From assembly GCF_000143415.4 (NCBI RefSeq), contig NW_003314395.1, positions 251,862-315,861 of the forward strand: DNA of 64,000 nucleotides, read 5' to 3'. The notes under the pieces are model-generated. The model was not told the origin of the DNA. It saw nothing but the letters and a program-made list of their open reading frames with translations, and ran no database searches. Numbering within the stretch: the stretch's first letter is position 1; each line of letters begins with the position of its first letter. The DNA is from Selaginella moellendorffii. Its lineage: Eukaryota; Plantae; Lycopodiophyta. The position numbers and the translations under genes were made by a program. Positions 15,574-50,698 of this stretch are shown in pieces.

Positions 15574-17096
15574 ATGAGGTTTGTCGTTCTCTTCTTTTTA
15601 CTTTCGGACGATTGATCGATCGATTCTCTCGCCATTGCAGTGGAACAGCGCCAGCAGCAGCATCATCGGCCGCAAATGTGGGATCGCTGGATTTAAATCC
15701 TCCCTCGATGGAGCTCCAGCGGCGGATCAAGGAGGCGACCGATACCCCGCGAGAGAATCAAAAGGATTTTCGCCTGGAGCATCTCAAACAGCTGCCCTGG
15801 CCCGACGCGGCTTACATCCGAGAGGCGAGGAGAAGAGTCCTTGCCAAAGAAGGATTTATCATCGACATGGATGGAGTGATTTATCGTGGCGATCATTTGC
15901 TTCCAGGCGTCAATGAGGTAATGTTCTCCCCTCTTTTTCTCTGGTTGTTACTTCTCCTTTTAGTAGCTAGTTTCCTTTTGAAAATCTTCTACGTGTTTTT
16001 GTGCTCGAAGTCCACCTCGACGATATGTGCTAATGCCACCCGTCAATCCTCAATGCAGTTTGTAGCGTGGCTCAACGATCATGGAAAGCGTTTCGTCTTT
16101 CTTACGAATTCCAGTGACAAGACGCCAGACGAGCTACACAGAAAGCTCTCTCGTCTCGGCGTTGTTTCTCACGGATCTAATTTCTACACTTCAGCAATGG
16201 TAAGCAAGCCTTTTAGTTTCTACGTGTCCAGCTAAAACTCACAGTTTTCTTTTCAGGCAACAGCTGCCTTTCTTACAAGCCAAAAGCCGCAAGGCAGTGC
16301 TTACGTCATCGGAGATCCGGGTCTTCATCAGGTACGTGTAAAATCTGAATTTAAGATCGGAAAAAAGCTCAAGGGTGACTTGCAGGCGCTTTACGCTTGT
16401 GGATATGTTATGAACGATGTTAACCCGGACTATGTTGTGGTCGGCGAAACACGCAACTACAGGTAAGAAACGAAGCCATTGAAGTTCTTGCTTTTATGTA
16501 AGAGTGGAATTTACAGCTATGAGAAAATAGAACACGCCGTGCATTTGGTTCTAAATGGCGCTAAACTTATAGGAACGAACTGCGATAAAACGGATCCCAG
16601 CCCTGCTTATCCAGGAGAGGTAGAATGTTTGCTTGTGTATAACTAGGAACAAACGAAAGCTAACTTAAGTAACTTTCAGGTCATACCAGCTGCTGGTTCA
16701 TTGATAACTCCCATTGAGAAGGCCTCTGGCGTGAACGCTTATTTTGTTGGAAAGGTATAAAGTCCTAGAAAACATGGATTGGATGACTGAAACCTTTTTC
16801 TTACAGCCAAATCCACTGATGATGAGGAGCGCTCTATCAGTGCTCGAAACAAAAAGAGTAGAGACTGTAATTATCGGCGATAGGATGGATACCGATATTC
16901 TAGGCGGCCTTGAGGTAAGATCGACTTTATTCAGCGAAACACAGATTCTAAACGTTTTCCGTTTTTCTAGGCTGGGATTGATTCTGTGCTCGTTCTCAGC
17001 GGGGTGACATCGTTGCAAGACACGAGGCAATGGTCTTTCCTGCCGCGGTTCGTGCTGCGTGGTATTTTTGATTTAGTAGACAGCAGCGGGAGCTAA
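15574..17096 (+). CDS. HAD-superfamily subfamily IIA hydrolase, NagD-like (multi-exon; first coding exon only ATGAG)
   Basis: [83 protein letters not shown]. About 9 short GT-AG introns. Confidence 0.92.
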
Positions 17097-17118: not shown

Positions 17119-17903
17119 TCAACCGGATCTCAACCCGCCATTGTCATTCCTCGGCTTGCATTTTTGGAGCTCCAGCGCAACCTGTAACGTGCGAAGAACA
17201 GTATTGACAACAGCGATTCTTTTCATGGACGAAGATCCAGATATTTTCTACGTACCGTCATGTAGCCGGGATGGGTGCCAATGGCAGCGATCACCTGTCG
17301 AGCAGAACTTATTTGGAGAAAATTCCAAATAAAGAAGACTTTGACGCACCGTTTCAAACTTTTCACCTCGGACGTTCAAGCGGACGACTTGCATTCCTTT
17401 GCGAACGGTGACGCCTTGGTAGACCTCTTGATCCGCGTAGACAACCGCGCTCGTTGCAATCAGCTGGTCGCCGACTTCTACCAGGCCACTCTTCTCTGCG
17501 TTGCCTCCTGGTGAAACTTCGGCCACGAAAATGTTGCCCGCAGCGTCCTCCTCAAGGATCATGCCTGTTCGAAATGAAACATCAAAATAAGAAATGGAGG
17601 AGTGTTTGTTGCTTGTTCTTCTCCTTAGATATACAGACCCAAAGGTTTTCTTAGCTCCACTTTGACTCTGCTGCATCCGGGTGGAGGAGCATCTTCCGAG
17701 GAACTGCTGCTGCTGTTGCTGCTGATAATTTGTGGTTGATTCGTTGGAGATGTTCTAAGAATGAATTTCTTGTGCTTGGGCAGAAGAATGGTCTTTTCAC
17801 CTGCATAGAATTGGAAAGGATATGTATGCACACTACCTGGATTTCTAGCTAGGAGGATCCTTGTCGCACAGGAGCAGCAAGGCCATGGATTGACCAAGGC
17901 CAT
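17119..17903 (-). CDS. Plastid-targeted PDZ-like domain protein
   Basis: Ser-rich transit-like N-terminus, then KVELRKPLG/MILEE...IFVAEVSPGGNAEKSGLVEVGDQLIATSA...GEKFET/VIAAIGTH.../VALELQKC. GT-AG introns. Confidence 0.85.
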
Positions 17904-17993
17904 GCCTTTACCACACACCCCTGATTTAAATGAAATGGATATTCTTTAAATGGTAGAAAGCCGCGTGCCGGTCGATCCCTTAAAAACTCAACA

Positions 17994-18170
17994 CTCTGCC
18001 TCTTGCGGCCCAGGGAAGAGATGGATGCGTTCGAGCAGCAGCTCCGCTGCGCGAGCCAAAGCCAGAGATTCCACTTCCCTTCGTCCGAGGGAGCTGTGTG
18101 GGAGGCAGATCAAGTTTTGGATTGCATAATAAAAAGGCGCTGCAGGATGAGATCCAGAAGCTCGAAGCCC
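17994..18170 (+). pseudogene. Remnant of the 3' end of a paralog of the adjacent 7TM gene (second copy at ~42440-42640)
   Basis: LCLLRPREEMDAFEQQL...SQRFHFPSSEGAVWEA...DEIQKL aligns with LCLFRPKEEMDNFEQEL...SQRIHFPSCEGAIWEA...DEIRKL of 18317-19499. Confidence 0.8.
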
Positions 18171-18316
18171 ATGAGCTGCTTCGATGGATCCGTGATCTAC
18201 GAGACCAGGCAAAGTTCCAGGACCAAGAGGTGATAAAGAATTAATAATCTCGGGTTGAGAAAGTCAAGAACGAGGGCTGGAAGAACAGATAGAGATCGAG
18301 CAAGTTTTCCTCGTCC

Positions 18317-19499
18317 ATGGCGTCTGGATGTTGCAACCAAGGGTGTTACATGAAAGTGGTGCCCAGTGATCCAGACACTCCCTACGACTTCACACTCCTG
18401 GCATTTGCTTTGGCCGCGACAATTCCATTCATCGTGGCGAATGGCGCGCTCTTCGCCCATCGCGGGCGCTCCTACTTTCGAGCGCAGGGAGGTGTGTATC
18501 TCATCTTAGGGAGTTCGCTAGCGGGCTTAGTCTGGATAGCAGCCCAGTTCGTCAACAATGACCACTTCAGCAGGATCGGGCCGCTCAGGAGCTGCTTGCT
18601 GTGGACGTTCTGGCTCCAGGGGACGGCTATTTGCCTGTGGTTCGTGCTCACTATTCTCCGGCTTGCTCGGATGTACGAGCTCAGCAAGAACATCGACAAC
18701 TGGTCGTGGAAATACTACGTTTTCGTCGCCCTGTGCCTGCTTCCCAACGTCATCCTGTCCACCGTTGCTAGCTTGAGTGACTTCCATGAACACGAGAGAA
18801 GGTACAGTTCATGGCTTGCGATGTTTCATCTCTTTCTCTCTCGGACTGATTGCTCTTGATGCCAGCGTTCGGTTGTGCAAGCTAAGCAAGAACTGGAAAA
18901 CCACCGTCTTCTCCGTGTATACTCCATACTGGCTGGTGCTCATCTTCGTCATCTATCAGCTGCGCAACCAGGAGGATCCACTGCTATCTACCGAGTACAG
19001 GGACACTGTGGACTACTTGGCTGTGACTATCGTCATTATCATGCTCTCCAGCATGGCGGATGTGACGATAACTAGCGATACTATCCCTGGCAGATGCGCC
19101 CTAACGTTTTCAACATGCTGCCTCGTGTTCTTTAACTTTTGGATACGCTTCGGGTGGCCGATTTATCTGTGTCTCTTCAGGCCCAAAGAGGAGATGGACA
19201 ACTTCGAGCAGGAGCTAACTTACGGTGGTGCCCAAGCTCTGGACATGGTTTACAGCCAAAGAATACACTTCCCTTCTTGTGAAGGTGCTATTTGGGAAGC
19301 TTTCTCGAAAGCTAGTGACGATCGGGACAGATACAAGGTAGAGCTTGCTTCTATCTTTTCTTCTTCTTGCTCTCTAGCTAATGCTACACTGAAACAGGAT
19401 GAAATACGGAAGCTGCAATTGCAGAAAGCGTTGCTGGAAGGGAAGATCCTAGAGTTACAAGTGCAGAAGAGAAAAGCACTTGGATCTGGTCACTCTTAA
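18317..19499 (+). CDS. Seven-TM protein resembling the 7TM region of plant RGS1, with a short coiled-coil tail and no RGS domain (exons 18317-18801, 18866-19337, 19398-19499; about 352 aa)
   Basis: Seven hydrophobic segments. Motifs MASGC, CLLWTFWLQG, YVFVALCLLP, CKLSKNW, EYRD and WPIY parallel AtRGS1 MASGC, CYLWAVWIEG, YIFLPLVLLP, CHMGLQW, ELRD and QPLL. Introns of 64 and 60 nt. Confidence 0.75.
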
Positions 19500-19589
19500 A
19501 GTTATGCTATCTTAATTGACTTTTTTCTTTGTTTTTGATTCTTTATTTGACTTTCAGTCTAGATCTATCTTCATCATTATATATAGAGA

Positions 19590-22500
19590 TGTGAGGTCCA
19601 AATGTATGGTTATAATGTGGTATATTAATATTAATATAATGGGATTTTAGTAACTGTCAAATTGATTTCAATTTGGACCATTTCCTCTTATATATAACTT
19701 AGGGTTTTTGGGCTTCCTTTTCCATATTCCAAGCACTTACAACAAGAAATATTTAAATATCTAAAAATATCTAGGGTTTTTGGGTTAATTGATATACATA
19801 TTTTTTGTATTCCCTTTCTATATTCCAAACACTTATATTGGTGGAGGTGAGGAGCACTTTTGATTGTCCTTGAAATTTAGGATTTTGGTTTACATCTAGC
19901 TTTTGCATTGTCTAGATCTAGCTTTTCCATTTCTTTTCTTTTGTTTTTCCCTTTCAAGATTTTGGTTTAGATTTAGCTTTTTGCATTGTCTAGATTTACC
20001 ATTTCCTTCTAGCTTTTTGTCATTTCTTTTCTTTTGCTCTTTCTTTTTTCGTTGATTTTCATGGTAGATTAGCAATCTCCTCCTTTGACTTTGGAGCAGT
20101 AGTTGGTCCAATTGTTTGATGCTATGTGCTTGCAATTGAACAACTAAACTCAATTGATGGTGGCATTCACAACATGTGGTACAACTCCTTTTGCTCTTGG
20201 TGCCAATCCTCATGTTCTGCCGGAGTTCTTTCACGGGAATCCTGGGGATGATGTGTACCATTGGTTCGATCACTTCACGGTGATTGCCATATATCATTCT
20301 TGGGATGATGCTCGACGTTTGCGTGAGTTTCCCATGTGTCTCCAAGAGATGGCGTTGCAGTGGTACAATGGTTTGAGTGTAGCCACTCATGGGGATTGGA
20401 GTGTTCTCCTGGACGTCTTCAAATGCGACTTTGGACATGCCGACGATTGTGATGATGCCTTCTAACAATTGCATTATCTTCTGCAAGGGCCATTTGAGTT
20501 GGTGATGCAATTTAGAGTTTGTTTCCGAAGTCTTTTCCTTCGTGCAGAGCCCAATATGTCGGAGTGGATCAAGCTAGGAATGTTGTGGCCAACACTTCGT
20601 CAAGATTTTATCAAACTTGTGCATGCACTTGCTCTTGCCACCTTTGACAATGCTCTTTACTTGGCACAATGTTATGAAACGTCGCCTCTTCCACTTCTCG
20701 TTACACGTATTTCACCTCCACTTCCTATGAGTGATGGTCCTATTCCAATAGAGGTTGATGTTGCTGCTGCTCGAGTCCAAGGACAAGGGCAAGGATGTGG
20801 TCGTGGCTGTGACGTTCGTTGCTGGGCGTGTGATGAAGTTGGTCATACTTATTGGCGTTGTTGGCGTTTTCCGAATTGGCGACCTCCATTTCCTTGGTGG
20901 AGACCTTGGCGTCAGCAAGCAGTGGAAGGTTTGAACACCGCGGTGCATCTAGGAAATGAGGAGTCGCGCGAGTAATGGAGGAACCTTGCGCGAATAAGTT
21001 AGTGACCCCTCCATCTTTCTTTCGGGAGTATCATCAAGGGGTTCACTTAGCACCGATTCATCCAATGTTTACTTTCCAAGTTTGTTTTCATAACACAAGG
21101 TCTCCTATTATTCTCTCCGTATTGGTTGATACAGGTTCAAGTTTATCTTCTATTGTTTGACCTATTGCCACACGTTGTTGTCTACACTTGCTTCATGCGG
21201 CAGAACAAGTTTTCATTCTTTATGGCAACAGCTGTATACATGCATATGCACATGATGAGGCAGACCTAGTTGTGCGTGTGGGCAATTTTGAGCTTGAGTT
21301 GTAGTCGTTGCGGATGGTGCCAAGTCAAGTTTTTGACCTCATTCTTGGTATGGATTGGTTGCAACGCAATCATGCCAAATGTGACTTTGAGGCTTCTCCC
21401 CCTTATTTCATACTTACTTATATTTCATCCATTCCTCTCACTTCCGTACCTCTTCATCCCTTTACTTTTACCTCTGCTTCCATTACTTTTGTTCCCACAC
21501 TATTTCCTCATGTGTTTCCATCTTGTTCTGCTCTTTCCTTTTCCGATCCCTCCAATGATCTTTGTGTTGCAGCGGTTGACCAGCTCATGATCTCTTTGAA
21601 TTTGATTTATCATCTGGGGCCAAGATTGCCATACATCATCCGATTCCAACTAGGGATGCTCGTCCAATCAAGGTTCTTGTTCGTTGTCGATCACCCAAGG
21701 AGATCAAAATTTTACGTGCAAACGTCAAAGAGATGTTGGCGATGGGTGTTATTCGGAAGTCGTGGAGTCCTTGGGCATGTGAACCTCATCTTGTGACGAA
21801 GCCTGATGGGAGTATTCATTTCTGCATCGACTATCATCCGTTAAACGAAGTGACGATCATGAATGTGTACCTTCTTCCTCACACTACTGATCTCTTGGAT
21901 TGTCTGAGGCGAAGTCGTTGGTTCACCAAGCTAGATCTTGCTTCTGGGTACTGGCAAGTACCGATGGTCAAAGAAGATATTCCTAAGACTACTTTTCGTA
22001 CACCATTTGGTTTGTACGAGTTCTTGGTGATGCCGTTTTGTTTGAACAATGCTCCAACAACTTTTCAGCGGATAATGGACAAGGTTCTTTGCGATATGCC
22101 AGAGGTGACTATTGACTTCATTGATGATGTTTTGATCCACTCGGAGGGGATGTGGGAGGAGCGCATTTGTGATGTTTGTAAAGTGTTAGATCGGCTACGC
22201 AACGTTGGTTTAAAGCTGAAGCGGTCGAAGTGGGTGTTTGGGTCCAAGGACACAACTTATCTTAGGTATTGTATTTCTCGTGAGGGTTTGCAAGTTGATC
22301 TTGAAAAACTTATGGCTGTTCTAAAGTTCCTTACTCCAAAGTGTGTGAATGATGTGCAACGCTTCTTGGGCAAGGTGTAGATCTCTGTCGTTATGTGGAT
22401 CATCTTTCTGATCGCATTGCACTGTTGCAAGCATTGCTGAAGTCATCAATGTCATCTTTCATCTGGTCTCTAGATTGTGAGCGGGTGTTCAGGGATCTCA

Positions 22501-23765
22501 AAGAGCTATTGACGACTCCTCCGGTTTTGGCATATCCTGACTATACTCAACCTTTTATTTTATGCGTGGATGCTTCTGACATTGGTCTTGGAGGTGTGTT
22601 AATGCAAGAGAGTTTGAGTGTGCTTGGTTAGTGCCATCCCATTGCATATATAAGCCGTACATATAACTAGCGGAGATGAACTGCTCCACGACAGAGAAAA
22701 AGTGTTTAGCAATAGTTTGGGCTTTCGAGAAACTTCATGCATATCTATATGGTTTCCGGACATTACTTGAAGGTGACCATGCTGCTATTACTTCATTATT
22801 GAAGTGAAAGAACCTAGTGGGTCGTATTGCTCGATGGGCTTTGAAGCTTCAAATATATGATTTTGATGTTGTTCATCACTTTGGGAGTTTTATGGTTGAT
22901 GTTGATGCCCTTTCTCAAGTTTCTCTTCCTTCTCCACTCTCTTCTCATGTTTCTAATGAGCTTGTTGTTTTAGCATCTGTGGATTTTTCTAGACGAGGAT
23001 TTTGTGCCAACGGCAGTTACTATACTTGACATTCAGTGTCCACAAGGCGCAGAGCAAGGTCTACCTTCTCTTGATGAGGTTCGCGAGGCTCAAAAGATTG
23101 AGCTATGTATTTGAAGGCTTCGAGATGGTTTTGAGAATTTTGCATCACTTGCTGATAACTTGCCTTTCTGGCATTTACATTCTCAATATCGCCTTAAAGA
23201 TGGCCTTCTTTATTTTGTGGGGACGAATTCTAATGATCATTTACGACTGATGGTGCCTTATGTCTTTATTCTACAGTTTCTCCATGCTTACCATGATTCT
23301 CCTATTCTAGGTGAGCATATGGGATATCGTCATATAACCGAGAAGCTGTGCAGGTCTTTCTATTAGCTAGAGATTTGCCGTGATATTATCCGGTATGTGC
23401 GTAGCTCCGTTTGGTGCTAAGCTCATAATACTCCCCCTCGTGCTGCGGAAAGACGGTTGGAGTTGATTGCAGTTTCCCGTCTGTTTGAGTTGGTGGCATT
23501 TGATCTTATGGGACCTTTTCCACAGTCGACTACTGATAATGAGTATATTATTATTGCTTCTGACTACTTGACTCGTTGGGTGGAAGTTGGTGCTCTTGCT
23601 AATGCCTTTGCAATTGCTGTTGGATACTTCCTCCTCAATTGAGTGGTGTTCCAACATTTATGTCCAGAGCGGATTCTTTTGAATAATGGTCTTGCATTTA
23701 TGGCTGAGGCATTTCTTGTTTTGACGTCTTGGTTAGGGATACGCCACATTTTTACGAGTGCTTAC
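19590..23765 (+). mobile_element. Ty3/gypsy family B, degenerate (5' LTR 19590-19837, tRNA-Ala-like PBS, gag-PR-RT-RH-partial INT)
   Basis: LTR starts TGTGAGG. PBS TGGTGGAGGTG near 19839. Zn knuckle CWACDEVGHTYWRC, protease VLVDTG, RT WFTKLDLASGYWQV...FIDDVLI, RNase H LCVDASDIGLGG. Integrase truncated by fusion to family C. Confidence 0.92.
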
Positions 23766-25087
23766 GCTACTAACCAACTTGACCTTTTTATCCGTGGGTT
23801 TGTCTCTTTTTGCTTAACTCCCCCCATGTACTCACTCGCTGATTGCTGGATTTGCCTTTCCGAAACCTTGAGGACTCATTCTTAGAGAAACTCTTTTTGA
23901 ATTTCCCTTTGCTATATGTTCCCTTTGGTTTAGCCCTTTTGCTAAACGTGGACCTTGACCCCGTCGTGTTCCCCTTTCACAGGTTATTGTTGAAATGCAC
24001 CTTGATGGTGTAAGCTCCTGAGTTTGGACTTCCCGGGAGGTCACCCAGCCCAGTACTATTCAAACCTAGGGACGCTTAACCCCAAGTATCCCAAGACCCT
24101 TAACCGATTGGAAAAGGGGGTGCACTCTTGTTCATGGGCCCTTTCCCTCTATATTTGAACCCCTATGGATCGTCTCTCGAGTCGTTCCCTTTGGTTGCTT
24201 ACAGATGGCCACATCTAATGCTTCCTTGTAGTTGGTCGGGTTCCAACGTATCACCTCACCGCAAGCCCAGGTTTGCAAGCCTGATATGAAGGCATGGAAC
24301 ATAACAAATATCCTCTTTGCCATAAACCCATTCACATACTCATGAATGGTTCCGGCCTGCTTCAGCCTACTCAGCTCATCTCTTAGATACAGAGTAGCAT
24401 TCAGAGGAATGTAAGTCGCGCGGATCCTCGCCTTCATCATTTCCCAAGTGGCCACCAGTCTTTCGTTGACATCTGTTGTTTTCCACCAAGACTTGGCATT
24501 ATCTGCCAAGTATGGTTTTGCATATGGGACCTTCTTCGAGCTTGGTAACCGCAACGCTCGGAAGTAGTCCTCCATATCGTAAAACCAATCCTCTACCACC
24601 TTATAGTCATTCACTCCTTTGAAGACTGGTGGGGGCTTTGGTTTATACTTGGGAATTGCTTGAGGGACTGATTCCACTTCGGTCTATTCGACCTTGTTTG
24701 GTTTTGCCTCAAATCCTACCGAAGGGTCCGCACCTTTTGCGCTGCCAATATTTGCAGTCTTTCGCTTTTTCTTCCGCTTCTCGTCACACTTTAGCTTGCG
24801 TATGAGAGTCTCCAACAAGGCATTGGTCTGTGCCAATTGTCCTTCTAGAACGTCCAATCGAGCCTTGAACAACCAAACCTCGCCACCGGACTCCTGTTTG
24901 GAAGTTTCCTCACTAGAGTCCTCCTCAGGCAAGGATTCCTCATCCATAGCCTTTTGTTCCACCGGAGGCTCCAGCTCTGGCGAAGGTTTTGTCTTTGCCT
25001 TGGTTCGTTTATGCCCTGCCTTTGCCATCTCCCAACAATCTGCCTCTATCCTTTGCTAGAACTGAGGAAAACACTCCGATACCAAAT
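23766..25087 (-). mobile_element. Truncated second family-C unit (PBS + gag) sharing the LTR at 25088-26201
   Basis: PBS TGGTATCGGAG directly follows the LTR. Gag KPKPPPVFKG...VEDWFYDMEDYF...LKQAGTIHEY is homologous to 38222-39349. Confidence 0.88.
24009..24203 (-). mobile_element. Solo LTR with a 5S rRNA-derived internal promoter (Cassandra-like), TSD GATGG
   Basis: Termini TGTAAGC...GCTTACA. Minus strand 24081-24026 reads GGTTAAGCGTCCCTAGGTTTGAATAGTACTGGGCTGGGTGACCTCCCGGGAAGTCC, matching the 5S A-box to C-box region. Empty sites at ~38460 and ~48483. Confidence 0.9.
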
Positions 25088-42015: not shown

Positions 42016-42375
42016 CCACTCTTCTCTGCGTTGCCTCCTGGTGAAACTTCGGCCACGAAAATGTTGCCTGCAGAGTCCTCCTCAAGGATCATGCCTGTTC
42101 GAAATGAAACATCAAAATAAGAAATGGAGTGTTTGTTACAGACCCAAAGGTTTTCTTAGCTCCACTTTGACTCTGCTGCATCCGGGTGGAGGGGCATCTT
42201 CCGAGGAACTGCTGCTGCTGATGATTTGTGGTTGATTCGTTGGAGATGTTCTAAGAATGAATTTCTTGTGCTTGGGCAGAAGAATGGTCTTTTCACCTGC
42301 ACAGAATTGGAAAGGATATGTATGCACACTACTTGTAGCACAGGAGCAGCAAGGCCATGGATTGACCAAGGCCAT
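42016..42375 (-). pseudogene. Duplicated 5' half of the PDZ gene, fused in frame to the coiled-coil gene
   Basis: Near-identical to 17486-17903, with in-frame deletions and a shortened 49-nt intron. ORF 41601-42092 crosses the junction. Confidence 0.8.
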
Positions 42376-42786
42376 GCCTTTTACCACACACCACTGATTT
42401 AAATGAAATGGATATTCTTTAAATGGTAGAAAGCCGCGTGGCCCGTCTATCAACAGTGTGCCTCTTGCGGCCCAGGGAAGAGATGGATGCGTTCGAGCAG
42501 CAGCTGACCAGCGCCGCTGCGCGAGCCAAAGCCAGAGATTCCGCTTCCCTTCGTCCGAGGGAGCTGTGTGGGAGGCAGATCAAGTTTTGGATTGCATAAT
42601 AAAAAGGCGCTGCAGGATGAGATCCAGAAGCTCGAAGCCCATGAGCTGCTTCGATGGATCCGTGATCTACGAGACCAGGCAAAGTTCCAGGACCAAGAGG
42701 TGATAAAGAATTAATAATCTCGGGTTGAGAAAGTCAAGAACGAGGGCTGGAAGAACAGATAGAGATCGAGCGAGTTTCCCTCGTCC

Positions 42787-43974
42787 ATGACGTCTGGATG
42801 TTGCAACCAAGGGTGTTACATGAAAGTGGTGCCCAGTGATCCAGACACTCCCTACGACTTCACACTCCTGGCATTTGCTTTGGCCGCGACAATTCCATTC
42901 ATCGTGGCGAATGGCGCGCTCTTCGCCCATCGCGGGCGCTCCTACTTTCGAGCGCAGGGAGGTGTGTATCTCATCTTAGGGAGTTCGCTAGCGGGCTTAG
43001 TCTGGATAGCAGCCCAGCCCAGTTCGTCAACAATGACCACTTCAGCAGGATCGGGCCGCTCAGGAGCTGCTTGCTGTGGACGTTCTGGCTCCAGGGGACG
43101 GCTATTTGCCTGTGGTTCGTGCTCACTATTCTCCGGCTTGCTCGGATGTACGAGCTCAGCAAGAACATCGACAACTGGTCGTGGAAATACTACGTTTTCG
43201 TCGCCCTGTGCCTGCTTCCCAACGTCATCCTGTCCACCGTTGCTAGCTTGAGTGACTTCCATGAACACGAGAGAAGGTACAGTTCATGGCTTGCGATGTT
43301 TCATCTCTTTCTCTCTCGGACTGATTGCTCTTGATGCCAGCGTTCGGTTGTGCAAGCTAAGCAAGAACTGGAAAACCACCGTCTTCTCCGTGTATACTCC
43401 ATACTGGCTGGTGCTCATCTTCGTCATCTATCAGCTGCGCAACCAGGAGGATCCACTGCTATCTACCGAGTACAGGGACACTGTGGACTACTTGGCTGTG
43501 ACTATCGTCATTATCATGCTCGCCAGCATGGCGGATGTGACGTTAACTAGCGATACTATCCCAGGCAGATGCGCCCTAACGTTTTCAACATGCTGCCTCG
43601 TGTTCTTCAACTTTTGGATACGCTTCGGGTGGCCGATTTATCTGTGTCTCTTCAGGCCCAAAGAGGAGATGGACAACTTCGAGCAGGAGCTAACTTACGG
43701 TGGTGCCCAAGCTCTGGACATGGTTTACAGCCAAAGGATACACTTCCCTTCCTGTGAAGGTGCTATTTGGGAAGCTTTCTCCAAAGCTAGTGACGATTGG
43801 GACAGATACAAGGTAGAGCTTGCTTCTATCTTTTCTTCTTCTTGCTCTCTAGCTAATGCTACACTGAAACAGGATGAAATACGGAAGCTGCAATTGCAGA
43901 AAGCGTTGCTGGAAGGGAAGATCCTAGAGTTACAAGTGCAGAAGAGAAAAGCACTTGGATCTGGTCACTGTTAA
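42787..43974 (+). pseudogene. Frameshifted copy of the RGS1-like 7TM gene
   Basis: About 99% identical to 18317-19499, but a 5-bp duplication AGCCC at 43016-43020 shifts the frame in exon 1. Confidence 0.88.
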
Positions 43975-44064
43975 AGTTATGCTATCTTAATTGACTCTTT
44001 TCTTTGTTTTTGATTCTTTATTTAACTTTCAGTCTAGATCTATCTTCATCATTATATATAGAGA

Positions 44065-47000
44065 TGTGAGGTCCAAGTGTATGGTTATAATGCAGTATAT
44101 TAATATTAATATAGTGGGATTTTAATAACTGTCAAATTGATTTTAATTTGGACCTCTTATATATAACTTAGGGTTTTTGGGCTTTTTTTTCCATATTCCA
44201 AGCACTTACAAAAAGAAATATTTAAATATTTAGAAATATCTAAGGTTTTTGGGTTAATTGATATGCACATTTTCTATATTCCCTTTCTATATTCCAAGCA
44301 CTCATATTTGTGGAGGTGAGGGGCACTTTTGATTGTCCTTGAAAAGTGCTTGAATTTGGGATTTTGGTTTACATCTAGCTTTTGCATCATCTAGATTTAG
44401 CTTTTCCATTTCTTTTCTTTTGTTCTTCCCTTTCAAGATTTTGGTTTAGATTTAGCTTTTTGCATTGTCTAGATTTACCATTTCCTTCTAGCTTTTTGTC
44501 ATTTCTCTTCTTTTGCTCTTTCTTTTTTCATTGATTTTCATGGTAGATTAGCAATCTCCTCCTTTGACTTTGGAGTAGCAATTGGTCCAATTGTTTGATG
44601 CTATGTGCTTGCAATTGAACAACCAAACTTAATTGATGGCACCATTCACAGCATGTGGTACAACTCCTTTTGCTTTTGGTGTCAATCCTCGTGTTCTGCC
44701 GGAGTTCTATCGTGGGACTCCTGGGGATGATGTGTACCATTGGTTCGATCACTTCACGATGATTGCCACATATCATTCTTGGGATGATGCTCGACGTTTG
44801 TGTGAGTTTCTCACGTGTCTCCAAGGGACGGCGTTGCAGTGGTACAATGGTTTGAGCGCAGCCACTCATGGGGATTGGAGTGTTCTCCTGGACGTCTTCA
44901 AATGCGACTTTGGACATGCTGATAATTGTGATGATACTTTCCAACAATTGCATCATCTTTTCCAAGGGCCATCTGAGTTGGTGATGCAATTTAGAGTTTG
45001 TTTCTGAAGTCTTTTGCTTCGTGCAAAGCCTAATATGTCAGAGCGGATCAAGCTAGGAATGTTGTGGCCAGCACTTCGTCAAGATCTTGTCAGACTTGTG
45101 TGCATGCACTTGCTCCTGCCACCCTTGATGATGCTCTTCGTTTAGCACAATGTTATGAGATGTTGCTTCTTCCACTTCTCGTTGCATGTCTTTCACCTCC
45201 ACTTCCTATGAGTAATGGTCTTATTCCAATGGAAGTTGATGTTGCTGCTGCTCGAGTCCAAGGATAAGGGCGAGGATGTGGTTGTGGCTGTGACGTTCGT
45301 TGCTGGGCGTGTGATGAAGTTAGTCATACTTATTGGCGTTGTCGGCATTTTCCGAATTGGCGACCTCCATTTCTTTGGTGGAGATCTTGGCGTCAGCAAG
45401 CAGTGGAAGGTTTGGACACCGCAGTGCATCCAAGAAACGAGGAGTCACGTGAGTAATGGAGGGACCTTGCGCGAATAAGTTAGTGACCCCTCCATCTTTC
45501 TTTCGGGAGTATCATCAAGGGGTTCACTTAGCACCGATTCATCTAGTATTTACTTTCCGAGCTTATTTTCATAACACAAGGTCTTCTATTATTCTCTCCG
45601 TATTGGTTGATACAGGTTTGAGTTTATCTTCTATTGCTCAACCTGTTGCCACACGTTGTTGTCTACACTTGCTTCATACGGTAGAACAAGTTTTCATTCT
45701 TTATGGCAACGGCTGTACACATGCATGTGCACAGGATGAGGCGGACCTAGTTGTGTGTGTGGGCAATTTCGAGCTTGAGTTGCAGTCGTTGCGGATGGTG
45801 CTAAGTCAAGCTTTTGACCTCATTTTTGGTATGGATTGGTTGCAACGCAATTATGCCAAATGTGACTTTGAGGCTTCTCCCCCTTATCTCATATTTACTT
45901 ATGTTTCATTCATTCCTCTCACTTCTGTACCTCTTCGTCCCTTTACTTTTACCTCTGCTTCCATTACTTTTGTTCCCACACTATTTCCTTATGTGTTTCC
46001 ATCTTGTTCTGCTCTTTCCTTTTCCGATCCCTCCAATGATTTTTGTGTTACAGCGGTTGACCAGCTCATGATCTCTTTGAATTTGACTTATCATCTGGGG
46101 CCAAGATTGCCATACATCATCCGATTCCAACCAGGGATGCTCGTCTAATCAAGGTTCCTATTCATTGTCGATCACCCAAGGAGATCAAAATTTTACGTAC
46201 AAACGTCAAAGAGATGTTGGCAATGGGTGTTATTCGGAAGTCGTGGAGTCCTTGGGCATGTGAACCTCATCTTGTGACAAAGCCTGATGGGAGTATTCAT
46301 TTTTGCATCGACCATCATCTGTTAAACGAAGTGATGATCCCGAATGTGTACCCTCTTCCTCACACTGTTGATCTCTTGGATTGTCTGGGGCGAAGTCATT
46401 GGTTCACCAAGCTAAATCTTGCTTCTGGGTACTGGCAAGTGCCGATGGTCAAAGAAGATATTCCTAAGACTACTTTTTGTACACCATTTGGTTTATACAA
46501 GTTCTTGGTGATGCTGTTTTGTTTGAACAATGCTCTAGCAACTTTTCAACCGATGATGGACGAGGTTCTTTGCAATATGCCAGAGGTGACTATTGACTTC
46601 ATTGATGATGTTTTGATCCACTCGGAGGGGATGTGGGAGGAGCACATTTGTGATGTTTGTAAAGTGTTAGATCGGCTACGTGACGTTGGTTTAAAGCTGA
46701 AGCAGTCGAAGTGGGTGTTTGGGTCCAAGGACACAACTTATCTTAGGTATTGTATTTCTCGTGAGGGTTTGCAAGTTGATTTTGAAAAACTTATGGCTGT
46801 TTCTAAAGTTCCTTACTCCAAAGTGTGTGAATGATGTGCAACGCTTCTTGGGCAAGGTGCAGATCGCTGTCGTTATGTGGATCATCTTTTTGATCGCATT
46901 GCACCGTTGCGAGCATTGCTGAAGTCATCAATGTCATCTTTCATCTGGTCTCTAGATTGTGAGCGGGTGTTCAGGGATCTCAAAGAGCTATTGATGACTC

Positions 47001-48244
47001 CTCCGGTTTTGGCATATCCTGACTATACTCAACCTTTTATTTTATGCGTGGATGCTTCTGACATTGGTCTTGGAGGTGTGTTAATGCAAGAGAGCTTGAG
47101 TGTGCTTGGTTAGTGCCATCCCATTGCATATATAAGCCGTACATACAATTAGCGGAGATGAACTACTCCATGACAGAGAAGAAGTGTTTAGCAACAGTCT
47201 GAGCTTTCAAGAAACTTCATGCATATCTATATGGTTTTCAGACATTACTTGAAGGTGACCATGCTGCTATTACTTCATTATTGAAGTGAAAGAACCTAGT
47301 GGGTCGTATTGCTCGATGGGCTTTGAAGCTTCAAATATATGATTTTGATGTTGTTCATCGCTTTGGGAGTTTTATGGCTGATGTTAATGCCCTTTCTCGA
47401 GCTTCTCTTCCTTCTCCACTCTCTTCTCATGTTTCTAATGAGCCTGTTATTCCAGCATTTGTGGATTTTCTAGACGAGGATTTTGTGCTAACGGCAGTTG
47501 GTATACTTGACATTCAGTGTCCACAAGGCGCAAAACAAGGTCTACCTTCTCTTGATGAAGTTCGCGAGGCTCAAAAGATTGAGCTATGGATTTGAAGGCT
47601 TTGAGATGGTTTTGAGAATTTTGCATCACTTGCTGATACTTACCTTTCCGGCATTTACATTCTCAATATCGCCTTAAAGATGGCCTTCTTTATTTTGCAG
47701 GGATAAATTCTGATGATCATTTACAACTGGTGGTGCCTTCTGTCTTTATTCTACAGTTTTTCCATGCCTACCATGATTCTCTTATTCTAGGTGAGCATAT
47801 GGGACATCGTCGTGTAACCGAGAAGCTGCGCAAGTCTTTCTATTAGCCAAAGATGTGCCGTGATATTATCCGGTATGTGCATAGCTCCGTTTGGTGCCAA
47901 GCTCATAATACTCCCCCTCGTGCTGCGGAAGGACGGTTGGAGTTGATTGCAGTTTCCCGTCTGTTTGAGTTGGTGGCATTTGATCTTATGGGACCTTTTC
48001 CACAGTCGACTACTGGTAATGAGTATATTATTATTGCTTTTGACTACTTGACTCGTTGGGTGGAAGTTAGTGCTCTTGCTAGCGCCTTTGCAATTGCTAT
48101 TGAATACTTCTTCCTCAATCGAGTGGTGTTCCAACATTTATGTCCAAAGCGGATTCTTTTGAATAATGGTCTTGCATTTATGGCTGAGGCATTTCTTGTT
48201 TTGACGTCTCGGTTGGGGATACGCCACACTTTTATGAGTGCTTA
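44065..48244 (+). mobile_element. Family B gypsy, duplicate copy
   Basis: Colinear with 19590-23765 and shares its truncation junction. Confidence 0.92.
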
Positions 48245-50698
48245 CGCTACTAACCGATTTGACCTTTTTATCCGTGGGTTTATCTCTTTTTTCTTGACTC
48301 CCCCATGTACTCACTCGCTGGCCGCTGGATTTGCCTTTCCAGAACCCCGAGGACTCATTCTTAAAGAAACTCTTTTTGAATTTCCCTTTGCTATATGTTC
48401 CCCTTGGTTTGGCCCCTTTGCTAAATGTGGACCCTGACCCCGTCGTGTTCCCCTTTCGCAGGTTATTGTTGAAATGCACCTTGATGGCCGCATCCAACGC
48501 TTCCTTGTAGTTGGTCGGGTTCCAACGCATCACCTCACCGCAAGCCCAGGTTTGCAAGCCTGATATGAAGGCATAGAACACATCCATATCACCCATGTCT
48601 GTAACAAATATCCTCTTTACCATAAACCCATTCACATACTCATGAATGGTTCCGGCCTTCTTCAGCGTACTTAGCTCATCTTTTAAATGCAGAGTAGCAT
48701 TCAGAGGAACGTAAGTCGCACGGATCCTCGCCTTCATCATTTCCCAAGTGGCCACCAGTCCTTCGTTGATCTCTGTCGTTCTCCACCAAAACGTGGCATT
48801 ATCTACCAAGTATGGTTTTGCATAGATTGTCTTCTAGGCGATGCAAGCACTGGCCTTCAATGAAGCTCTTGTCCCATTGCTGGTAAAGGAAAAGAAAACC
48901 ATCATATGGGACCTTTTCTGAGCTTGGTAACCGCAACGTTCGGAAGTAATCCTCCATATTGTAAAACCAATCCTCCACCACCTTAACTCCCTTGAAGACC
49001 GGTGGAGGCTTTGGTTTGTACTTGGAAATTATTTGAGGGACTGATTCCACTTCGGTCTATTCAACCTTGTTTGGTTCTACCTCAATTCCTACCGAAGGGT
49101 CCGCACCTTTTATGCTGCCAACATCCGCAGTCTTTCGCTTTTTCTTCCGCTTCTCATCACGCTTTAGCTTGCGTACGAGAGTCTCCAACAGGGCATTAGT
49201 CTATGCCAATTGTCCTTCTAGAACGTCCAATCGAGCCTTGAACAACCAAACCTCGCCACCGAACTCTTGTTTGGAAGTTTCCTCACTAGAGTCCTCCTCA
49301 AGCAAGGATTCCTCATCCATAGCCTTTTGTTCCACCGGAAGCTCCAGCTATGGCGAAGGTTTTATCTTTGCCTTGGTTCGTTTATGCCTTGCCTTTGCCA
49401 TCTCCCAGCAATCTGCCTCTATCCTTTGCTAGAACTGAGGAAAACACTTCGATACCAAATTGTAAGCCACAATTTTTTCCTTTCCAATTTGCCAACTTAC
49501 CTCGTCTTTCCGACCAACACTGCCTTGGCTTTTGCTAAGTTCCCTCACCAAATTTCCCACCTACTATACCTAGTCTTACTTGGTTTCAGCTACTCACTGC
49601 ACAAGCAATGGAGTGTTAGCCATCCATCCACGGATTCCCAAATCTCTCCCAATCCCCCTCCCCGGGTTAGACTGGACTTAAGGTTCAGCTACACTCCCCG
49701 CAGACACAAGTAGCCAATCACACCAAGCCTCCAGGTTCCTAACATCCTTTGGTACAACAAGACTTGATCATAGGACCTTCTAAATCCCAAGCCTTGAATG
49801 CAACACTTGCTTCGGGACATTGGGGCGAAACACCGTGGCCTAACGGCCTGATATAGGTACCTCTACCCCGCCACTTCTATCCCGAAGGAAAGGCCCAAGC
49901 CCCTAGGAAGGGTGAGGACCAATGAGCCACAAGGTATTCAAGTGGGGCACCACTCCACATGAGCCAGAAGCACTGCAGTCGGTTTCCCTTTCGGGAGTGG
50001 GAGCTGCTCTTGAGCACTTCCTTGGGTGGCCCCTCTAGCACCACCTGAGTCCATGCTCACTCCCACCCAAGGCCCTTCGGCCCCAATCTCAACCTCAAGT
50101 CAGTTTGGAAGCACCACTGGAGAGTTCCTTCAAGACTGGTTTCTGGACTTCACTATCCCCACTATACTTTTGGAACCCTCTACAGCCCCCCCCCCCTGGG
50201 AGAGGCACGCTTTGGGCTTTGACCCCTTGACCTGTATTAGTACTCAGACTCAGTCTCGGACTCGATCTCGAACCTGACTTCGAACTCAGTCTCAGACTCA
50301 ATCTCGGACTCGATCTCGGACTCGATCTCGGACTCGACCTCGGACCCGATCTTGGACTCGACTTCGGACCCGATCTTGGACCCAATCTCGGATCTCGGAC
50401 TTTGTCTCGAACTCGCAGTCTCCGAGTCGGCCTCGAACTCGATCCTGGACTCTATCTCGAACTCAGTCTAAGAGTCCGTCTTGGACTTGATCTCAAACCT
50501 GGTCCCATCCAATGAACTCTTTGTCATTTTGGTCATGCTTTCGGGGATCCTTTAGTCTATGACACCTCGGGGAGTTGGTTCCTTACAACTCCACCACCCA
50601 TAAAAGAAGTTTGATGCCCACATCGAACATCTCTTTTTATCCTATGACTTATTGACCATGTCTCCGGGGGCATCCCCCTACTTAGTGGTGTGCCTAAG

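Follow-up and report, generated by a model that had tools for sequence, protein, structure and literature searches.

A three-exon gene on the plus strand of a 64-kb window of the Selaginella moellendorffii genome (the window being the whole stretch analysed, positions 251,862 to 315,861 of contig NW_003314395.1) encodes a 352-amino acid (aa) protein that we read, with a probability of about 0.6, as a class C-type receptor-like protein having neither a ligand-binding domain nor a regulator of G-protein signalling (RGS) box, with a proposed G-protein-related role. The identity part of this reading, that its seven-transmembrane (7TM) domain is of the class C (glutamate/GABA-B-like, 7tm_3) type, is very probable. 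Plants are usually held to lack the canonical classes of G-protein-coupled receptor (GPCR), with the 7TM-RGS protein RGS1 as their sole receptor-like G-protein regulator; the gene described here belongs to a conserved class C-type 7TM family kept in spikemosses, clubmosses, ferns, liverworts, gymnosperms and a charophyte.

Gene structure and transcripts

The gene occupies 18317-19499 (+), with its ATG at 18317 and a TAA stop at 19497-19499, and its coding sequence of 485 + 472 + 102 nt (1059 nt) makes up 352 codons and the stop. Its parts are the following.

18317..18801, +, exon 1: 161 codons plus 2 nt, encoding a Cys-rich 21-aa N-terminus and transmembrane helices (TM) 1 to 4
18802..18865, +, intron 1: 64 nt, GT..AG, phase 2, in extracellular loop 2, four residues ahead of the conserved Cys166
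18866..19337, +, exon 2: the extracellular loop 2 Cys, TM5 to TM7, helix 8, FPSCEGAIWEA and the start of the C-terminal helix
19338..19397, +, intron 2: 60 nt, GT..AG, phase 0
19398..19499, +, exon 3: 33 codons plus TAA, encoding the heptad-repeat end of the C-terminal helix

Because intron 2 is open in frame, the mechanical open reading frame (ORF) of 18777-19499 runs straight through it. A word-seeded search with the ORF 18777-19496, in which only exon 2 residues were scored, retrieved two annotated S. moellendorffii proteins, P0001 (351 aa, SELMODRAFT_449405) and P0002 (352 aa, LOC9654119). Both have the same junctions as our gene model (...HEHERS/VRLCK... and ...RYK/DEIRKL...), and identity to P0001 was 97% for exon 1 (residues 1-161) and 94% for exon 2. 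In what follows, the window exons were searched one by one and P0001 and P0002 served as full-length proxies.

Transcript contigs from four public runs, each of a different study, were compared with positions 17900-19800. In all four runs contigs skipped both introns exactly (64 and 60 nt, GT..AG), and several contigs showed 0 differences to the window, including at bases specific to this gene (copy 1) and not to its tandem copy 2; one of these joined 18682-18799 to 18864-19055 and carried the copy-1-specific base 19047. A 5-nt insertion that distinguishes copy 2 was found in none of the contigs from the four runs. The gene is therefore real, intact, transcribed and correctly spliced, and the 3-exon ORF of 352 aa in the initial annotation of this DNA was borne out, with both introns confirmed by spliced contigs. 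That annotation had also asked whether transcripts splice on to a downstream RGS domain. No contig of the four runs joined the gene to any further exon, a downstream RGS exon included.

Contigs extending beyond the stop had 7 differences in exon 3 and then continued as GTTAATCTATGCAAG..., a sequence absent from the window; these two features indicate that they derive from a paralogue. A search of the window for the paralogue-type 3' untranslated region (UTR) found none. Every contig that reached the stop (19499/19500) had the GTTAATCTATGCAAG continuation, which belongs to a more highly expressed paralogue.

Seven-helix membrane domain

Kyte-Doolittle hydropathy of the window exon translations placed four hydrophobic segments in the first exon and three in the second. 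An AlphaFold2 model of P0001, built on a 34-sequence family alignment (predicted local distance difference test score [pLDDT] 87, predicted template modelling score 0.77), likewise contained seven TM helices, followed by helix 8 (residues 269-281), a short helix and a long helix (residues 301-350). The seven hydrophobic helices noted in the initial annotation thus recur in both approaches. They are located as follows.

18380..18457, +, TM1: residues 22-47, a helix in the AlphaFold2 model of P0001, with the window hydropathy peak at 27-45
18494..18556, +, TM2: residues 60-80, with the family motif SS.xGLxW
18593..18685, +, TM3: residues 93-123, beginning with the invariant Cys93, C-x-LW-x-FWLQ, aligned to the class C TM3 cysteine
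18710..18775, +, TM4: residues 132-153, from AlphaFold2 and hydropathy
18888..18962, +, TM5: residues 170-194, with the invariant extracellular loop 2 Cys166 ahead of it
18978..19064, +, TM6: residues 200-228, preceded by ...STEYRD..., aligned to FNE(F/Y)R of clade B (a sister clade described below) and FNEAK of mGlu
19083..19178, +, TM7: residues 235-266, starting with an invariant G-R, its ...GWPIYLCLF end aligned to class C PKxYIILF

Only 21 residues precede TM1, and there is no Venus-flytrap or cysteine-rich ligand-binding domain.

An unbiased fold search (VIA) of 48,161 representative chains placed every class C representative at the top of the ranking, with Z scores of 21.1-17.1 and 234-264 residues aligned. 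This block comprised GABA-B, GPR156, mGlu2/1/5/4, GPR158, CaSR, TAS1R and GPRC5D, and apart from these it held a single entry, a GPCR-like fold designed de novo (8oyx_B, Z 18.3); receptors of classes A and B ranked lower (Z <=15.8). The best Foldseek match for the P0001 model was the human GABA-B receptor, and when the Foldseek matches were re-scored the top 50 were all class C receptors (Z 22.0-19.2).

Sequence profiles gave the same placement. The family profile matched mGlu4 (E 8.6e-7) and Drosophila GABA-B1 (E 4.4e-6) over the whole TM domain. In register with mGlu4 were the TM3 Cys, the extracellular loop 2 Cys, FNE-x-K/R before TM6, R-x-Y-R-x-F in intracellular loop 2, and P-x-Y-x-x-LF where TM7 ends. 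Family members show little or no variation at Cys93 and Cys166, both of which align to mGlu4 cysteines and form a pair at the sequence level. Clade B carries the class C signatures FNE(F/Y)R and Y-x-x-(I/V)F in the mGlu4 register, and the window protein has weaker versions of them (STEYRD, WPIYLCLF). An exhaustive phmmer search with P0001 of 1.84 billion protein representatives yielded 46 clusters at E <=1e-3, 14 of which carry Pfam 7tm_3 and three RGS. The clade B member P0015 cleared the 7tm_3 cut-off of 33.5 bits with a score of 53.6, and hhalign matched the window exons to a profile of clade B and 7TM-RGS proteins with a probability of 99.4% for exon 1 (E 3.5e-21) and 97.9% for exon 2 (E 6.3e-13).

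Other searches gave less. Pfam assigned no family above threshold to the window exons, P0001 or P0002, and its sub-threshold matches (NADHdh, DUF2231, F-box and others) were rejected as noise. P0001 had no phmmer match among PDB sequences. An ESM Atlas feature search returned GPR156 and family 3 clusters with a score of 0.90, which we treat as a lead only; with the 7tm_3 clusters excluded, scores were <=0.79 and gave no lead, and the Atlas structure search returned meaningless matches only (TM <0.32).

C-terminal tail

The tail after TM7 is 86 aa long and comprises three recognisable elements.

19185..19223, +, helix 8: residues 269-281, EEMDNFEQEL...
19269..19301, +, FPSCEGAIWEA: residues 297-307, capping the long C-terminal helix at its N-terminus and forming its first turns
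19281..19490, +, C-terminal helix: residues 301-350, split by intron 2, with an AlphaFold2 block of pLDDT 92-97 over residues 311-340

A Pfam scan of the exons, P0001 and P0002 found no RGS box (PF00615), and a tblastn search of the whole 64-kb window with three protist RGS boxes gave noise only. The absence of the RGS box makes GTPase-activating protein (GAP) activity from this polypeptide impossible. The initial annotation had put the tail at about 75 aa, against 86 aa here, and judged it too short for an RGS box; the lack of the box stands.

Of the tail elements, helix 8 is conserved over the widest range of members (xEMDxFExEL in clade A, which contains the window gene, and EEYxxxF in clade B). 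The FPSxEGAxWEA motif, put forward earlier as conserved, is so in a narrower sense. Its exact form occurs only in the Selaginella paralogues and in a gene relic upstream and is thus lycophyte-specific; Diphasiastrum has IPSSEGAMLEA, and the remaining members are reduced to an F/I-P-x-S helix cap. The C-terminal helix is predicted to be amphipathic and about 50 residues long, with Leu325, Leu332 and Leu339 at heptad d positions, the first two being invariant in 11 family members. A coiled coil, as the initial annotation had it, is plausible from the modelled helix, with few clean heptads.

Protist 7TM-RGS proteins as nearest relatives outside plants

The nearest non-plant relatives in the tree were three proteins in which the TM domain occurs together with an RGS box: Ancoracysta P0019 (E 4.2e-12 against P0001) and Muranothrix P0023 (E 2.9e-9 against P0001), each with a Pfam RGS match, and P0031 (a eukaryotic protein of 747 aa, from a Logan assembly), which combines a class C-type TM domain and an RGS box with C-terminal leucine-rich repeats. 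Exon 1 aligned with TM1-TM4 of P0023 at 33% identity (E 8e-13), and the three TM domains are overall 22-33% identical to the plant protein (E 4e-12 to 3e-9; phmmer scores with P0001 of 53-62 bits), sharing the motifs NR-x-Y-x-P-x-K, SS-x-GG-x-x-W, HF-x-R, C-x-LW-x-FW and G-R. On sequence grounds the TM domain is homologous to those of the protist 7TM-RGS proteins. The protists, and by architecture AtRGS1, differ from the window protein in their RGS box, in place of which it has helix 8 and a heptad helix. Farther out than the protist proteins lay fungal (Kickxellomycotina) family 3-like proteins.

Land-plant RGS1 was absent from the 46 phmmer clusters and from two word-seeded profile searches, the second of which had the protist 7TM-RGS proteins in its profile. 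Clade A is therefore closer to the protist fusions than to plant RGS1.

Streptophyte family

Named relatives were found in lycophytes (Selaginella, Diphasiastrum), ferns (Psilotum, Adiantum, Ceratopteris), liverworts (Riccia, Marchantia), gymnosperms (Cryptomeria, Picea) and the charophyte Klebsormidium. All members carry helix 8 and a long heptad helix where 7TM-RGS proteins have RGS. A maximum likelihood tree of 42 proteins (quick search, SH-aLRT support only, unrooted) resolved two sister clades (support 92). Clade A (support 96) holds the proxies of the window gene, Diphasiastrum, Psilotum, Riccia and one further source, and clade B (support 97) branches as the species tree does, running from Klebsormidium by way of liverworts, lycophytes and ferns up to the gymnosperms. 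Judged from these sequences, the family is ancient, being present in Klebsormidium, and the clade split predates the divergence of liverworts and vascular plants. The search matches included no named angiosperm or moss member; since many matches are unnamed transcriptome or metagenome proteins, we treat this as non-detection.

P0020 (LOC9657419; L002 8001-9306), the clade B paralogue in Selaginella, is a stand-alone four-exon gene flanked by a PPR gene and by a minus-strand gene that lacks annotation, and no RGS gene adjoins it. Its phase-2 intron lies four alignment positions from intron 1 of the window gene, which suggests that intron 1 is ancestral and common to clades A and B. The Marchantia polymorpha member of clade B is P0018 (Mp1g05640). 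Existing annotations of the family are automatic ('GPCR family 3 profile domain-containing', 'hypothetical'), and we found no published description of the family, its locus tags or land-plant class C receptors in the literature searched. With no named member from angiosperms or mosses, it would be understandable that the family has automatic annotations only and is missing from those papers.

Comparison with known receptors

The closest structural counterparts are the human class C orphan receptor GPR156 and the GABA-B subunits, whose TM fold the model matches with Z 20-22 and a root-mean-square deviation of 3.4-4.9 A over 243-264 residues; GABA-B1 and mGlu4 also match at the profile level. 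The window protein resembles GPR156 in its very short N-terminus and GABA-B1/B2 in the predicted coiled-coil helix after TM7. GABA-B subunits pair through their cytoplasmic coiled coil, and GPR156 and GPRC5, like the window protein, have no Venus-flytrap or cysteine-rich domain, so that such a domain is typical of the class and not obligatory. Unlike GPR156 and GABA-B, with which it shares 9-15% identity, the window protein is of plant origin and has an 86-aa tail; the likeness is one of fold and sequence.

The class C orphan receptors GPR158 and GPR179 also combine a class C TM domain (7ewp_A, Z 19.1) with a cytoplasmic helix, and dock RGS7-G-beta5 in trans, GPR158 doing so via its cytoplasmic helix. 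By analogy with GPR158, the partnership of a 7TM domain with RGS would be workable in trans as well as in cis. GPR158 differs from the window protein in its large extracellular domain and long C-terminus, and plants are not known to have an RGS7 or DEP-type RGS protein.

Proposed mechanism and alternatives

The protein would lie in the membrane with its N-terminus outside and its C-terminus inside, and may dimerise through its TM domain and C-terminal coiled coil, as GABA-B, GPR156 and GPR158 do. It could then act in heterotrimeric G-protein signalling as a GAP-less sensor or scaffold, for example by docking G-alpha, an XLG protein or an RGS protein in trans, as GPR158 docks RGS7. We put this G-protein mechanism forward tentatively, by analogy with these receptors. 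The link to G-alpha signalling is drawn because the protist fusions join this TM domain to RGS. Because plant G-alpha proteins activate themselves, with no need for a receptor as exchange factor (PMC3386157), docking or sequestering of G-alpha, XLG or RGS would be likelier than exchange-factor activity. Coupling to XLG or heterodimerisation with RGS1, both suggested in the initial annotation, are speculation. That the family is a GAP-less second branch of the 7TM-RGS/class C lineage in non-flowering streptophytes, with a tail that recruits G-alpha, XLG or RGS in trans, is a more specific proposal and an improbable one in this full form.

Several points weigh against reading the gene as that of a class C-type protein with a G-protein-related role. 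Membership of 7tm_3 is transitive, since neither the exons nor P0001 match Pfam directly, and, as no land-plant RGS1 was recovered, the link to plant G-protein regulators is indirect. Self-activation of plant G-alpha makes a classical GPCR role unlikely. In the heptad scan the clean run of the C-terminal helix was short, with about three repeats and a Lys at one a position. Contig depth was zero past 19499, which leaves the window's own AT-rich 3' flank uncovered and the mRNA 3' end unseen. The dN/dS ratio between copy 1 and the P0001 gene was 0.57, from only 27 differences, too few to decide.

The strongest competing explanation is a class C-fold membrane protein unrelated to G proteins, which might be a sensor or scaffold of another pathway or a trafficking or transport 7TM protein with a coiled-coil adaptor tail. 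Many plant 7TM families act without G proteins, and this family went undetected in angiosperms, which retain G proteins and RGS1; plants also use G proteins without receptor exchange factors (PMC3386157, PMC3718340). However, at least three protist proteins join a TM domain of this type to an RGS box, a classic sign of a link to G-alpha, and every solved structural relative is a receptor coupled to G proteins or RGS. We consider this explanation a serious one that is nevertheless rather unlikely.

If the proposed recruitment of a partner in trans were true, plants such as Marchantia, reported to lack 7TM-RGS, would gain a membrane regulator of G-protein signalling, and loss of the family from angiosperms would explain why it has never been seen in Arabidopsis or rice. 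Marchantia polymorpha, with Mp1g05640 and reportedly no 7TM-RGS, is a tractable system in which to study the role of such a receptor.

Relationship to plant RGS1

Another explanation is that the gene is a land-plant RGS1 paralogue that lost its RGS box, gained a coiled coil and acts by modulating RGS1 or XLG. AtRGS1 presumably starts with MASGC and carries a TM3 motif, C-x-LW-x-x-W, similar to that of the family. An AlphaFold model of the AtRGS1 TM domain was reported in 2024 to be most like class C mGlu1 (PMC11580166), which speaks for such an origin, as do the position of the protist 7TM-RGS proteins as nearest outgroups of the plant family and the NCBI name of the Cryptomeria clade B gene ('regulator of G-protein signaling 1 isoform X1-X5'), a gene that has no RGS domain. 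According to Urano et al., Selaginella has one 7TM-RGS protein and Marchantia lacks any (PMC3386157, PMC3718340). On the other side, the exhaustive phmmer search that recovered the protist 7TM-RGS proteins at 53-62 bits returned no land-plant RGS1, nor did the two profile searches, and the family reaches Klebsormidium and had formed two clades before liverworts and vascular plants diverged. In an unrooted tree, moreover, loss of an RGS box looks the same as never having had one. We regard an RGS1 paralogue as unlikely. A recent derivation from RGS1 does not hold, given the presence of the family in Klebsormidium. The broader label of an RGS1-like 7TM protein without RGS was right in the missing box and in the kinship to 7TM-RGS proteins, here those of protists; 'RGS1-like' is imprecise, the gene being a member of a class C-type family that is old and separate.

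Genomic context

A tandem segmental duplication that repeats at an interval of about 24.5 kb (17486-24008 against 42016-48487, 94% identity) contains the gene. The duplicated unit carries the gene, the upstream relic and a downstream retrotransposon, with further blocks up to about 60 kb. The second copy and the relic are located as follows.

42787..43974, +, tandem copy 2: about 24.5 kb downstream, coding parts 98-100% identical to copy 1
17994..18241, +, upstream relic: decayed partial C-tail of a paralogue, LCLLRPREEMDAFEQQL...FPSSEGAVWEA...DEIQKLEA...

Copy 2 is frameshifted in exon 1 by a 5-nt insertion (a CAGCC duplication) within 43009-43016. The flanks of the two copies are about 89-92% identical, below the coding parts, and this contrast points to gene conversion or recent inactivation. 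A third copy, on an unplaced S. moellendorffii scaffold (L001) that carries P0001, shares about 92% identity with one window copy and about 91% with the other in long alignments. The relic is closest to P0003 (SELMODRAFT_408812; 73% over 45 aa) and recurs upstream of copy 2 (42456-42711, +) and on scaffold L001. Exact-sequence look-ups of P0002 and P0060 found no locus.

That copy 1 is itself a functionless, decaying member of this lineage-specific tandem array, as the frameshifted copy 2, the relic upstream, the retrotransposon downstream and the dN/dS ratio against P0001 might suggest, is very improbable, since its frame is intact, it is transcribed and correctly spliced with exactly matching contigs, and it retains all family-invariant residues of a family conserved since before the liverwort/vascular plant split.

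Should the 5' UTR extend as far as the ATG at 18022, an upstream ORF of 70 codons would begin there; one run had contigs from 18028. Other block pairs in the window are 26.9-28.9 kb with 50.9-52.8 kb and, inverted, 28.9-32.7 kb with 57.3-52.8 kb, which together make a complex repeat structure. The downstream retrotransposon spans about 20400-24000 (+) and encodes a protease and a reverse transcriptase. Its parts, and exons of two neighbouring genes, are listed below.

20469-20975, +, CCHC-type zinc-knuckle-like ORF of the retrotransposon
21308-21796, +, aspartyl protease of the retrotransposon
21733-22380, +, reverse transcriptase of the retrotransposon
17248-17676, -, PDZ-domain exon of a neighbouring gene (E 1.2e-5)
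15612-16235, +, HAD-like hydrolase exon (Hydrolase_6) of a neighbouring gene (E 9e-15)

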